Assembly: GCA_004431415.1 (NCBI GenBank)
Contig: QPMI01000469.1
Span: 1 to 64,000, forward strand
DNA from: Cyanophora paradoxa CCMP329
Lineage: Eukaryota > Plantae > Glaucophyta
Direction: 5' to 3'
Length of the DNA stretch: 64,000 nucleotides
Part shown: positions 17,160-21,935 of the stretch, piece after piece
Position numbering within the stretch: the stretch's first letter is position 1
Layout: the number at the start of each line of letters is the position of its first letter
Program-made: the position numbers and the translations under genes
The notes under the pieces: generated by a model
Told to the model about the DNA's origin: nothing
Seen by the model: the letters and a program-made list of their open reading frames with translations, nothing else
The model's database searches: none

Positions 17160-17520
17160 TGTCGAGCGCGGTAAAGCGGCCAGGGTATGGCCCAACCATC
17201 CTCAGCTTGCTGTACCCCCAGAGGTAATCTGCGAGGCCAATCTCTTTTCAAGGTCCGTCGCAGGCCCGCGTACGTCGGAGAACTGTGCTATCGTTGTGTC
17301 CGTCGCTGCAATGCCTGCAGACCTAGGTTGATAAGACCCTCGGCTCCCCGATTCTTTGACCGCCGGGCTGCATAGAAGAGCCAGCCCTTGATTCCCGCGT
17401 GCATGTAGATTAGTGTACATAACGTTTATACGAAGAATTCCTTCGCCCGACAACTGCACTCCCTTCACTTTCTTCCGCGTACGCCTTCTGACTTCTGCCC
17501 TTTTAGGGGCCGCGGTCGCC

Positions 17521-20398
17521 ATGGCGTTCGTCACGACGCCCACGCCAAGCCTCCGGGCTTCTGGTTCTGTGGCGGGATTGTCCTCCGCCCGTTCGGCAGC
17601 GGAGCCCTCGAAGCCGCAGCACCCACGGGCGGCTGCCGACCGAGCGTACGCAGCTGCCGGCGCCGGCCACCAGTTCCGTGGCGGGGAGACTTTCCTAGTT
17701 CGTCGTTCCTTCTACGGCGTGCAGCTGAAGAAGGCAACTTACTTTGGCCGTTTCGGGTCGAACGCCGATATTCCGGCTGTGCGTGCGTCGGCCCAGCCTG
17801 ACGAGGCTTGCGATGAGGACGTTCCGACCAGCAACGGAATTATGAAGGCCGATTCGACCCCTGCAAAATCGAGTCTAGCCGATAAGCTCAGTGCGCTCCT
17901 GGCGAAGCTCAAGTCGTACTTCTCGGACGCTTCAGAGGAGACCCCGGTTCTCGCTAACGCCGGCGCGGCTGGATCTGTACCTCAGCCCGCGGCCCCGAAG
18001 ACCGCTTGGAAGAAGGTGAGACAATCTGATCACGGGGTAACGCTCGATCTGAACTTGCGCGCGCGTACACGAAGTTAATTCCCATGCTCATCATGTTCTT
18101 CGCAATCCTTTTCAACTACACGGTACGAAAACGCGCTCGCTTTGCGGGCGTTGAAACTATCTCACTAACGGTGACGGCAGATCCTGTGCGTCGGTCCACA
18201 CCACGATTATTCCCCGCCGGTCGCCGGCAACCGCTCACTTTTGACCCGATTCGCAGTCGCGATACCAAGGACGTGCTCGTGGTTCGTTCGGGCACGATCT
18301 CGGCGGAAACGTTGTGCTCACAGCTGCGCGGTGACAGGTCACCGCCCCGGGCTCCGGTGCCGAAGCGATTCCGTTCCTGAAGACCTGGGTCGTCGTCCCT
18401 GCGGCTCTCGGCTTCCTCGTCTTCTACACCAAGATGTCCAACGTGCTCAGCCGAGAGAACCTTTTCTACAGCGCTGTGCGTTCCACGTGTTAAGTCTTGT
18501 GCTCGTGAGTCGATGCTGATGGAGCTGTCAGCTTGTGCCGTTTCTTCTCTTCTTCGGCCTGTTCGCTACTGTGCTTTATCCAGCCAAGGACTTGCTCCAC
18601 CCGACTGCTTCTGCAGACTGGCTGGCATCGATTCTTCCCGCCGGTTTCAGCGGCCCTATCGGTATGTCGGCCGCTGTCGACTTGGACCCCACCGCCCGCT
18701 GACCACTGCGTGCAGCCATCTATCGCAACTGGACCTACGGTCTGCCGTGCTGTCTTTCACTTTTGATCTTCACAGAAACTGATATTTTTCTTTTCTTCAG
18801 CCTTGTTCTACGTGCTCGCAGAGTTGTGGGGCAGTGTCGTGCTGAGCCTTCTCTTCTGGGGCTTTGCCAACGAGGTCAACCCCATCTCGTGTTGTGAGTC
18901 CGTTTTGCACACTGAGACTTCTCTCCAGATCTGCAAGGTCGAGGAAGCGAAGAAGTTCTATCCCCTCTTCGGGCTTGGGGCGAACGTGGCGCTTGTCGTC
19001 TCGGGTCGTGTGGTGAAGGTGCACTTCTGGCATTATCGAAGTAGTCAAACTATCTCAGTCGAATTCTTATCGCTCTTCCCGTCGTAGTATCTCTCAAATG
19101 TTCGCGACTCTCTCCCAGCGGGCGTCGATCCGTGGGGCTACTCTCTCAACGCTCTGATGGGCCTCGTGCTCCTCGGCGGTCTTATTGTCCTTGGCACCTA
19201 TTGGGCGATGAACCGCTGGGTTCTCACCGACCCAGAAATGTACACGCCGCCTGCGGCTGGCGCCCCTGTCAAGTCCGGCAAGAAGAAGAAGCCGAAGATG
19301 AGTGTCAAGGAGTCCTTCATGTATCTCGGCCAGAGCCCATACATCCGCAATCTTGCTGTTCTCGTCATCTCGTACGGCGTGTCCATTAACCTCGTGGAGG
19401 TCACCTGGAAGTCGAAGATCAAGCAAGCGTTTCCCAACCCGAACCAGTACTCATCCTTCATGGGCGACTTCTCGACCCTCACTGGCATCTGCACTCTCGG
19501 CATGATGCTTCTGTCCCGTGTCGTGTTCAAGAAGTTCGGATGGGGCACTGGTGTGTAATCTTCCGTCTTTTCCTGTATTTTTCGTCAGAATTTTTCTGAC
19601 GATTTTCGTGTAGCTGCGATGGTCACTCCTGGAGTGCTTCTGGCAACCGGGCTGTCCTTCTTCGGGCTCATTCTTTTTGAGGGTTAGCGCCCTTCTTATA
19701 CATTGCTGGCTTTGTCTCACTCTTTTCTTTGCCGCAGACTTCTTCACGCCTGTGACCCAGATGTTCGGCATCTCACCACTCATGCTCGCTGTTTTCTGCG
19801 GAGCAGCACAGAACATCCTTTCCAAGGCCACCAAGTACTCGCTCTTTGATCCCACGAAAGAGATGGCATACATCCCCCTCGACCCTGAGACCAAGGTCAA
19901 GGGCAAGGCTGCCATTGATGTTGTAGGCGCTCGCCTTGGGAAGTCTGGTGGTGCCTTCCTGCAGCAAGTCCTCATTGTCTCGCTTGGCTCTCTGAGCGCT
20001 TCCACCCCCGTGCTGGCTGCCTGCTTCCTTGTCGTCATTCTCATGTGGGTCCGTTCCACAAGCCAGCTGTCCAAGGACTTCAAGGTCAAGTCTGCCGAGT
20101 TCGAGAAGGAGCAGAAGAAGATTGCAGAGGCCGCTGCCGCGTCTGCACCTGCCATCGCCCCACGTGCTCCGTCCCCAGTACGTCACAAATTTGCCTGTTG
20201 TCATCTTGCTTCCTGTTAATAATTTGGCGGTAGAAGCGACAGGCGACGGTGGTTTGCCCTCAGTGCCTGGGCTCTGGGGTTGTATACCGGAAGGATCCCG
20301 CGGCGGGTTTCGTGGAGACTCCATGCAAGTTCTGCGAGGGGAGTGGCTCTGTGCCGGAGCCCGTTGCCCCAACTCAACCCGGTGTTGCCATCAACTAA
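17521..20398 (+). CDS. NTT: Plastid ATP/ADP translocase (NTT/TLC family) with a C-terminal DnaJ-type zinc-finger exon
   Basis: Transit peptide MAFVTT; [80 protein letters not shown]. The last exon (20234-20398) encodes [16 protein letters not shown]. Confidence 0.93.
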
Positions 20399-20562
20399 CA
20401 CTTCACCGCAAGACTCTCTCGACCAAATTAGTGTTTGCTCTCTTTTAAGTAGCCTTCCTAGGGTATGGGGTGGGTTTGGGGTATGGATGTCGACTTTTGT
20501 TTAGCCACTTTGAACGTGTCTTTTTGCATGGAGTGAGCAGTTACTGCTCAAAGCTACGCTTC

Positions 20563-20980
20563 GAGCATTTGGACACGATCTAAATCGCGGGGTTCTAAGT
20601 GTAGAATGTACTCGTGCACTGCAGCGACATGTGGCCCAGCCCACTAAGCTTGTGCCTGGCCAGGGGAACTCTGAGCCTTGCATGCGCAGGGGAACTATGT
20701 GCCCCCCCGCAGACACTGGGGTATCCCCTTGGGGGTACTATGTATCCCCTGCGTCTTGCAATTGGGGCTCGTGGCCCAAAACGGCGTGGCCCACTGCCCC
20801 ACCCGCTGTGCTGGCACTGGCACCTGTAGCCAGTGTCTGCGGAGGGCAACGCGTACGCAGGGTCTGGCCGGCTAGCCATGAGCTTGGTGGGCTGGGCCGC
20901 CCCCGCGGCAGGGGCACCACAGTGTACATCCCACACTGTTGTAGCCCCGACGTTGCGATTTAGTTCGTGTCCAAAAGCTA
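20563..20980. mobile_element. Most complete family A MITE-like element, about 420 bp, with long imperfect terminal inverted repeats
   Basis: Left end GAGCATTTGGACACGATCTAAATCGC..GGCCCAGCCCACTAAGCT; reverse complement of right end TAGCTTTTGGACACGAACTAAATCGC..GGCCCAGCCCACCAAGCT. Confidence 0.8.
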
Positions 20981-21165
20981 ATCGATTGGTGCATTGGTGT
21001 GCAAGAACAGCAGTGGGGCAGTTATTTCGAAGGAGCATAGATGATGGTGATCCGGTTGTTGGAGAGTGACATGGAAGATGTCGAGAAACACATGTACAGC
21101 AGTGGGGGCGCACAAATCTGATGGCCAGATATAGGACCACTGTGACGCTTCTGAGCCTGTCAAAA

Positions 21166-21935
21166 TCAGTCGGGAATTTTGTCCCTGAAAAACGATAAGG
21201 AGGTTGCGGAAAAGTAACACCGCAGCAAACAATTTCGTACACCTGGATTGAGTTGGAATTCTCAGTTCAAACAATGAGACAAAAGCAATGAGGATGGCAA
21301 AACACACTTCTGCCATTCGTGCCAGAATAACAGCTTTTGAAGTGTCTTGTATTTCTCCAGCGAGAAAGAATTCATCAAGAATGACGTATACCTTCACAGA
21401 TTCAGGTCATATGTCAATGCAAAACACAAGTGAAGCAGACCTTGTGAAAGTTAAATACGAGGTCTAGCTCGCAGACATTCCCGAAGTACTGGTCAAGAAC
21501 CTCGACCTGATTGCAGTCCACATTAGCTTTGCTTCTGCATCCCCAGTCTAACATGTGCTCACGAAGAGGTGGATGGACTCGAGGTACGAGAGCTCGTTAT
21601 CAGTCACGTCGACGCACAGGCTGAAGAAAAGCCCCGCGTAGCGCCTGTAAATGATTTTGTAATTGCGGAACTGAGTGACGGTGAGCGTCGCATTCGCATG
21701 CGCGTGCCGCACGGGATGTGCAGTACCTCGACGAAATTCGTGAACTTCGGTTCCCTGTGTGTCACGAGTCTGTGCACCTCTGTCTCTAATTGAGCCTTCT
21801 CGTCGTCTCCCAGCGGCATCCAGTACTTGGACAGCCGCGTCTTTCCCTGCCGGTTCTGCAGCAGAATGAACCGGATCTGCGCGCCGGCGCTCAGTACGCG
21901 ACGTTCTTCTGCGCTAAATGGAGCATCTGCACCAT
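21166..21935 (-). CDS. AP2S1: AP-2 adaptor complex sigma subunit
   Basis: [72 protein letters not shown]. Confidence 0.92.

Follow-up and report, generated by a model that had tools for sequence, protein, structure and literature searches.

ATP/ADP translocases of the TLC family (PF03219), referred to here as NTTs, provide the route for ATP and ADP between the host cytosol and either plastids or obligate intracellular bacteria, and they are central to ideas on how primary plastids were integrated. Structures have been solved for a plastid member (AtNTT1; 9j3j/9j3l/9j3m) and for a chlamydial one (Chlamydia pneumoniae NTT1; 9j3n/9j3o), and no regulatory or accessory domain on any NTT is described in the literature searched. 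From the glaucophyte Cyanophora paradoxa, an open reading frame (ORF) of 2166 nucleotides (nt) (TRINITY_DN12309_c0_g1_i1:235-2400) has been expressed in Synechococcus, where it is reported to have led to ATP export on ADP challenge (PMC11632070). Here we describe an NTT gene on the forward strand of contig QPMI01000469.1 of C. paradoxa CCMP329 (assembly GCA_004431415.1), whose first 64,000 nt were analyzed as one stretch, hereafter the window. The encoded protein shares the TLC profile and fold of the solved NTTs; in contrast to them, it adds an N-terminal extension of 160 amino acids (aa), a linker of ~40 aa and, at its very C-terminus, a pair of CxxCxGxG motifs that is predicted to hold a single zinc ion.

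Outside the NTT family, the tail has the layout of zinc center II of the DnaJ cysteine-rich domain, i.e. CxxCxGxG, a two-stranded hairpin and CxxCxGxG again, with a spacing between first cysteines of 23 residues in the tail versus 22 between DnaJ repeats 2 and 3. Unlike DnaJ, it has two repeats instead of four and one predicted zinc site instead of two, and it comes without the J domain, the G/F region and the C-terminal substrate-binding domains. Anti-TRAP (PDB 2bx9, 3lcz), the second-best match of the tail in Pfam, in PDB sequence searches and in VIA-align, is a free-standing single-zinc CxxCxGxG module whose mode of action is to bind another protein; it is, however, a soluble, oligomerizing bacterial protein of 53 aa, whereas in Cyanophora the module forms the end of a membrane carrier. 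The third set of relevant proteins comprises the J-less DnaJ-type fingers of plastids (LQY1, BSD2, OR, CYO1/SCO2, HCF222 and PSA2), which, as here, combine a plastid setting and CxxCxGxG motifs with the lack of a J domain, but which are anchored by one or two helices and not by a transporter, and whose usual repeat number is twice that of the tail. No sequence link between the tail and these fingers beyond the motif itself was detected in the profile and tail searches. Free DnaJ-type finger proteins assist Rubisco, photosystems I and II and cytochrome b6f in plants, and the J-less plastid fingers other than LQY1 also have four repeats and two zinc ions. In LQY1, the four repeats bind two zinc ions, and the membrane-anchored protein places its finger in the stroma and displays thiol/disulfide activity (PMC6805722).

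Does the finger exon truly belong to the carrier? A first-pass annotation, made from the letters of the window, had placed a 56-nt GT-AG intron between the two and proposed that it is spliced in frame. Transcript runs from three independent studies (X1, X7 and X14) and a DNA run (X15) were compared with positions 17300-21300; a run with ~60% of the gene's sampled words was taken as RNA-like and one with 100% as DNA-like, and exon borders were defined as contig joints adjusted to GT..AG. The intron in question, intron 12 (20178..20233), begins with GT at 20178-20179, ends with AG at 20232-20233 and is indeed 56 nt long. It lies in phase 0: the Pro codon CCA is complete at 20177, after 2001 coding nt, and the next exon continues in frame from 20234. 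The joint from 20177 to 20234 is present in contigs of X1, X7 and X14, all of which skip exactly these 56 nt between GT and AG at an unambiguous position, whereas X15 shows not a single joint over the whole of 17300-21300. Moreover, one X1 contig of 2427 nt (record 2) spans 17509-20624 across all 12 introns, from the start-codon region to the 3' untranslated region (UTR); since this single contig covers both the NTT gene and the finger exon, the latter is part of the NTT mRNA. An origin of the exon in another transcript, or its erroneous joining, is ruled out by the full-length contig together with the joints in three studies and their absence from the DNA run.

The remaining features of this junction fared variably. 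The three nearby AG dinucleotides (20232-20233, 20235-20236 at +3 and 20241-20242 at +9) all preserve the frame, as had been pointed out, whereas the accompanying statement that the ORF list misses the exon was mistaken, for the list holds most of it as a 49-aa GTG ORF at 20249-20398. Reading through intron 12 leads to an in-frame TAA at 20217-20219 (ORF 19677..20219); an intron-12-retaining form was not found among the transcript contigs of the three RNA-like runs, and contigs lose rare variants. The 13 exons sum to 2166 nt, or 721 codons plus the stop, which is also the length of the ORF expressed in Synechococcus, the match to PMC11632070 being one of length alone. For the protein searches, the spliced model was searched exon by exon and the joined product was represented by a database protein, the public C. 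paradoxa EukProt model tig00020780_g13759.t1 (P0153, 721 aa), to which the product is identical as judged by tblastn with the window's large exons. The finger exon is already annotated in this public model.

The body of the protein is unequivocally that of an NTT. Residues 163-635 of P0153 cover positions 23-491 of the 491 positions of the TLC profile (E 3.3e-201; 669.8 bits versus a cut-off of 21), and exons 5, 6, 10 and 12 each match this profile singly. The nearest solved proteins are AtNTT1 and C. pneumoniae NTT1, at E about 1e-182 and 57-59% identity. From an alignment of 72 sequences, AlphaFold2 modeled residues 150-721 with a mean predicted local distance difference test score (pLDDT) of 89.7, and Foldseek superposed this model on ATP-bound AtNTT1 (9j3l) with a template modeling (TM) score of 0.95 and a root-mean-square deviation (rmsd) of 1.4 Å, and on C. 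pneumoniae NTT1 (9j3n) with a TM score of 0.93. Like the solved NTTs, the model has twelve helices in an MFS-like arrangement; simple hydropathy picks up 11 of the 12 helices, and the twelfth was taken from the solved fold. By every feature that can be tested, the protein is thus a member of the TLC/NTT family, and of the plastid type, as originally assigned; the gene is the nuclear gene for the ATP/ADP translocase of the C. paradoxa muroplast (plastid) and belongs to clade A of the two glaucophyte NTT paralogues.

The tail itself is encoded by exon 13 (20234..20398), which contributes 54 aa (residues 668-721) and the stop codon TAA (20396-20398), and whose translation over 20234-20395 is 100% identical to residues 668-721 of P0153. 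The first motif, CPQCLGSG (20255..20278), contains Cys675 and Cys678, and the second, CKFCEGSG (20324..20347), Cys698 and Cys701; sequence and transcript contigs agree that these two exact CxxCxGxG motifs, noted at first pass, lie in an expressed final exon. A six-frame scan found no other CxxCxGxG pair in the whole 64-kb window. Against Pfam, exon 13 scores 26.7 bits with DnaJ_CXXCXGXG (PF00684; gathering threshold 32.7) and 24.1 bits with Anti-TRAP (PF15777; threshold 32), the latter value being 16.5 bits for P0153 and thus likewise below the gathering threshold. The best PDB sequence match of the tail is the cysteine-rich domain of Escherichia coli DnaJ (1exk), specifically its repeats 2-3, which form zinc center II, and a profile built from the four glaucophyte tails introduced below retrieved 1exk first and anti-TRAP next.

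Modeled alone with AlphaFold2, the tail folds with a core pLDDT of 84-90 and two strands between the Cys pairs, and the same hairpin appears in the full-length model at a pLDDT of about 80. In VIA-align, 10 of 48,161 chains reached Z >= 2, and eight of the 10 are DnaJ-type finger proteins: DnaJA2 (4.7), anti-TRAP (4.1), 1exk (3.8), Streptococcus pneumoniae DnaJ (3.7), DNAJA3 (3.0), BSD2 (two entries, 3.0 and 2.4) and Ydj1 (2.3). The remainder consists of UvrA2 (2.0), whose zinc module is similar, and chain R of PDB 8xkv (3.5), which belongs to the Ycf2-FtsHi import motor of the Arabidopsis inner envelope. Foldseek returned, for the tail, UvrA zinc modules (rmsd 1.2 Å over 34 residues), lambda Q, DnaJA2, 1exk, anti-TRAP and BSD2, with the zinc modules of UvrA, DnaJ and anti-TRAP superposing at an rmsd of 1.2-2.1 Å. 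A shape search of the ESM Atlas found clusters of DnaJ cysteine-rich domains nearest (TM 0.58-0.60), while a feature search of the same resource gave a best value of 0.77 (phage clusters), which is below the meaningful level.

Searches of metagenomes with the clade A tails pointed in the same direction, in that they yielded three loci, all of them ordinary bacterial DnaJ genes with no TLC gene nearby, and, over 36 residues, one of these bacterial DnaJ proteins shares 53% identity with the tail in its repeats 2-3. Neither a free-standing close relative nor a C-terminal fragment turned up when 5.8 billion proteins of 33-105 aa were searched with the four-tail profile (no match at E <= 10). Residues 662-721 of P0153 retrieved only P0153 itself among 33 word-sharing candidates of 397-1262 aa, a blank that carries little weight because the known relative P0001 was missed too.

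Membership in the DnaJ/Hsp40 family proper is ruled out: P0153, P0001, P0122 and P0152 show no match to the J domain (PF00226) at E <= 0.1 in Pfam, and instead of the four CxxCxGxG repeats of PF00684 there are two, here and in all glaucophyte relatives. Of the initial description of a DnaJ-type zinc finger, the resemblance to one zinc site therefore stands, while the score with DnaJ_CXXCXGXG remains short of Pfam's cut-off and a DnaJ cysteine-rich domain would have twice as many repeats. Because the four cysteines are invariant and the fold matches are to zinc modules, we infer that they would bind one zinc ion in a knuckle like zinc center II of DnaJ. In other words, the tail is predicted to be half a DnaJ-type cysteine-rich module, a beta-hairpin knuckle with one zinc site.

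How widespread is this architecture? A HMMER search with exon 12 over 1.84 billion representatives gave 2033 TLC hits, and among the best 150 of these, three have a C-terminal Cys pair. None of ~265 other TLC proteins fetched, including those of Camellia, Adiantum, Ascophyllum and many Chlamydiae, has the motif, so that the plant, stramenopile and chlamydial NTTs examined are all devoid of a CxxCxGxG pair; the earlier remark that known plastid NTTs end without such a domain agrees with all non-glaucophyte NTTs examined. In glaucophytes, by contrast, the module ends four of the five NTT sequences found, and these fall into two paralogue clades. In clade A, the window gene (P0153, 721 aa; CPQCLGSG ... 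CKFCEGSG) is joined by P0001 (683 aa), a protein 76% identical to it and encoded by a 3011-nt transcript contig of JGI sample 3300017104 (CPQCLGSG ... CRVCTGSG). Clade B contains the second NTT of C. paradoxa (P0122, tig00000147_g9461.t1, 853 aa; CRQCGGSG ... CPACAATG) and Cyanoptyche gloeocystis A0A7S2JKH1 (P0076/P0151/P0152, up to 941 aa; CVRCNASG ... CPVCRGTG). Residues C675, C678, S681, G682, R686, C698, C701 and G705 (P0153 numbering) are invariant across the four tails of both clades.

Comparison of the window exon with the P0001 transcript shows 23 of 34 aligned residues to be identical, 18 of these 23 being specified by different synonymous codons. That the residues are kept despite such codon divergence indicates purifying selection on the tail at the protein level. 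A chance pair of motifs was considered as well and is ruled out by its sole occurrence in the six-frame scan, by the presence of the module in orthologues and by the synonymous divergence at identical residues.

In a maximum-likelihood tree of 40 NTTs, glaucophyte clades A and B form one clade with an ultrafast bootstrap (UFboot) of 95 and an SH-like approximate likelihood ratio (SH-aLRT) of 84, recovered in 98% of bootstrap trees, and this clade is nested in the NTT clade of Archaeplastida with 100/100 support; in a quick tree of 76 rows, clades A and B lie in a polytomy. Since the two clades form one, the simplest history suggested by these data is that the finger was acquired once by the stem lineage of glaucophytes and that A and B arose by duplication afterwards. 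The phase-0 intron at the domain border would fit addition at the level of an exon.

Between the last helix and the first cysteine lie ~33 residues in P0001, 49 in the window protein and roughly 130-160 in clade B. Because this spacer varies between orthologues and paralogues, from ~33 to ~158 residues, the module most probably sits on a flexible tether of unconstrained length. The start of the linker was modeled by AlphaFold2 as an extension of the twelfth transmembrane helix, with confidence dropping. Clade B proteins carry an extension of ~130-160 aa between TLC body and finger (P0122 672-797, P0152 729-885), which has no Pfam match and contains the motif (D/E)AVVALLE in Cyanophora, in Cyanoptyche and, more weakly, in Gloeochaete.

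As for the side of the membrane, Lys and Arg residues number 9 in the central loop, 8 in the loop before helix 11 and 13 in the C-terminal tail, and the alternate loops are low in positive charge. The termini of bacterial NTTs are cytoplasmic. Because of this positive-inside pattern and the homology with bacterial NTTs, the tail should face the stroma, together with the Lys-rich central loop, from which it is separated by six helices.

Several observations weigh against this picture of a tethered, stromal, DnaJ-like zinc knuckle. The scores with PF00684 are below the gathering score of 32.7 not only for the exon (26.7 bits) but also for P0153 (21.5) and P0001 (19.7), and the clade B tails are not matched at all. 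In absolute terms, the structural similarities are weak, with Z <= 4.7 in VIA-align and E >= 0.03 in Foldseek, which a stretch of ~35 residues would lead one to expect. The stromal orientation is a prediction from the positive-inside rule and from homology with bacterial NTTs. Finally, the fifth glaucophyte sequence, clade B P0055 of Gloeochaete wittrockiana, aligns through the extension and then ends without the cysteines; here the finger may have been lost or be dispensable, or the model may be incomplete.

What could a zinc knuckle be doing at the end of an ATP/ADP carrier? By analogy, we tentatively favor, while holding it at somewhat short of probable, the view that the tail is an autonomous, tethered protein-binding module. 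On its flexible tether, the knuckle would act in the manner of anti-TRAP and of the J-less plastid fingers (BSD2, LQY1 and OR), either docking a stromal partner to the carrier or handling the carrier's own stromal surfaces. It would stand outside the transport pathway, and any redox sensitivity would stem from its zinc thiolates.

It is also conceivable, although we regard it as unlikely, that the tail is a redox or zinc switch. In such a scheme, darkness or oxidative stress would oxidize the site, or thioredoxin would reduce it in the light; the site would then lose its zinc and refold, and the tail would thereby gate or bias ATP/ADP exchange in a ball-and-chain or autoinhibitory fashion. Thioredoxin acts in the stroma, the predicted side of the four invariant cysteines, and the flexible tether is compatible with a ball-and-chain; on the other hand, the length of this tether varies ~five-fold between the paralogues, which is unusual for a precise plug, and Ser, Gly and Arg are invariant besides Cys, suggesting that a folded surface is conserved in addition to the cysteine chemistry. 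We know of no redox control of plant or chlamydial NTTs, which also counts against a switch. In its favor are the thiol/disulfide activity of LQY1, itself a plastid DnaJ-type finger (PMC6805722), as well as the ATP export reported for the ORF of the same length (PMC11632070), which would give directional control a physiological meaning. The broader proposition that the tail is a light/dark control element, working by thiol redox or zinc release, or else a Rosetta-stone fusion that betrays a partnership between NTTs and DnaJ-type fingers, strikes us as similarly doubtful.

Slightly less likely again would be a role in cis in the biogenesis or stability of the carrier, with the knuckle serving as a built-in holdase or assembly handle for insertion into, or retention in, the inner envelope, or as a mark for quality control. 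The J-less plastid fingers have mostly assembly or holdase roles, and the fold matches include BSD2 and the Ycf2-FtsHi import-motor subunit (8xkv chain R); for LQY1, such a role is treated in PMC6805722. However, plant, red algal and chlamydial NTTs are inserted without a tail of this kind, and no evidence of an interaction with import or insertion machinery was found.

Oligomerization, in which knuckles would pair or cluster carriers, or bring together the A and B paralogues, much as the zinc domain of anti-TRAP trimerizes, appears improbable. It could account for the place of anti-TRAP among the best sequence and fold matches and for the presence of the module on both paralogues of one cell, but the matched entries of solved NTTs are listed as single chains. 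As to an artifact or neutral add-on, be it a mis-joined exon, a piece of another transcript or a recent functionless extension, it can draw on the weak Pfam score and nothing else, and is refuted by the single contig over the whole mRNA with joints in three studies and none in the DNA run, by the same architecture in transcripts of other glaucophytes, and by residues conserved despite saturated synonymous change.

The other exons, all on the forward strand and all bordered by transcript joints, are distributed as follows. Exon 1 (17521..18015) contains the start codon and a 165-aa N-terminal extension, its tblastn match corresponds to residues 1-166 of P0153, and its joint follows 18015. There is no Pfam match in the first 160 residues of the protein, whose MAFV start we take to fit the Phe-type transit peptides of glaucophytes; at ~160 aa, the N-terminal extension (window 17521-18015) far exceeds what a transit peptide needs. 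Exon 2 (18075..18122), assigned by sequence, transcript joints and tblastn, opens the TLC body with the start of the first transmembrane helix. It is followed by a micro-exon of 5 nt, ATCCT, between AG and GT (exon 3, 18181..18185), which completes the codons of the conserved 'ILRD' and whose letters are present between 18122 and 18257 in X1, X7 and X14. The TLC body continues through exon 4 (18257..18281; sequence and transcript joints), exon 5 (18338..18475; profile positions 52-96, by Pfam and transcript joints), exon 6 (18532..18661; Pfam and transcript joints), exon 7 (18716..18739), exon 8 (18801..18874) and exon 9 (18929..19018), the last three resting on transcript joints. Exon 10 (19088..19550), defined by Pfam and transcript joints, includes the Lys-rich central loop, and exon 11 (19614..19682) is again TLC by transcript joints. 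Exon 12 (19738-20177) is divided between the final helices of the TLC domain, with the Pfam profile ending at residue 635 (19738..20081), and the linker of residues 636-667 (20082..20177), which is Lys/Glu-rich at first and then Ala/Pro-rich. Downstream of the stop codon, the 3' UTR (20399..20636) is covered as far as 20624 by X1, whose contig then continues into adapter letters, and as far as 20636 by X7.

Beyond the gene, a convergent gene for a clathrin adaptor small (sigma) chain lies on the minus strand at 21305-21712, with PF01217 matched by three ORFs of exon size, and has no relation to the NTT. RNA contigs cover 20977-21184 of this neighbor, with a splice at 21184. In the intergenic segment 20820-20937, where loose ends fall at both limits, short pieces also occur on another contig of the DNA run and of the RNA-like runs; the segment is probably a dispersed repeat.

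With respect to the literature, the words 'zinc', 'DnaJ' and 'C-terminal' do not occur in the text of PMC11632070, the C. paradoxa genome paper (PMC6704402) makes no mention of a finger on an NTT, and the literature searched, most of it outside subscription journals, attributes neither a zinc finger nor a DnaJ motif nor any C-terminal domain to an NTT of glaucophytes. The exon is part of a public model, and the architecture is glaucophyte-wide on two paralogues and no peculiarity of this gene. What we report is an accessory domain that occurs across the glaucophyte lineage on an otherwise familiar carrier, already public as sequence and undescribed as a fusion in the literature searched.

For the reading of PMC11632070, it is relevant that the construct behind its conclusion that the glaucophyte carrier can export ATP was apparently the entire precursor with its tail. 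More generally, a conserved putative zinc module on the predicted stromal side of both glaucophyte NTT paralogues offers a handle on the regulation of ATP exchange, on the stromal contacts of the carrier and on the recruitment of DnaJ-type fingers to plastid membrane proteins. Were the tail a control element after all, the exchanger would be coupled to the redox state of the stroma. If that reading or the Rosetta-stone reading were true, nucleotide exchange would be actively gated in the most cyanobacterium-like of plastids, which would bear on the question of whether early plastids exported or imported ATP.

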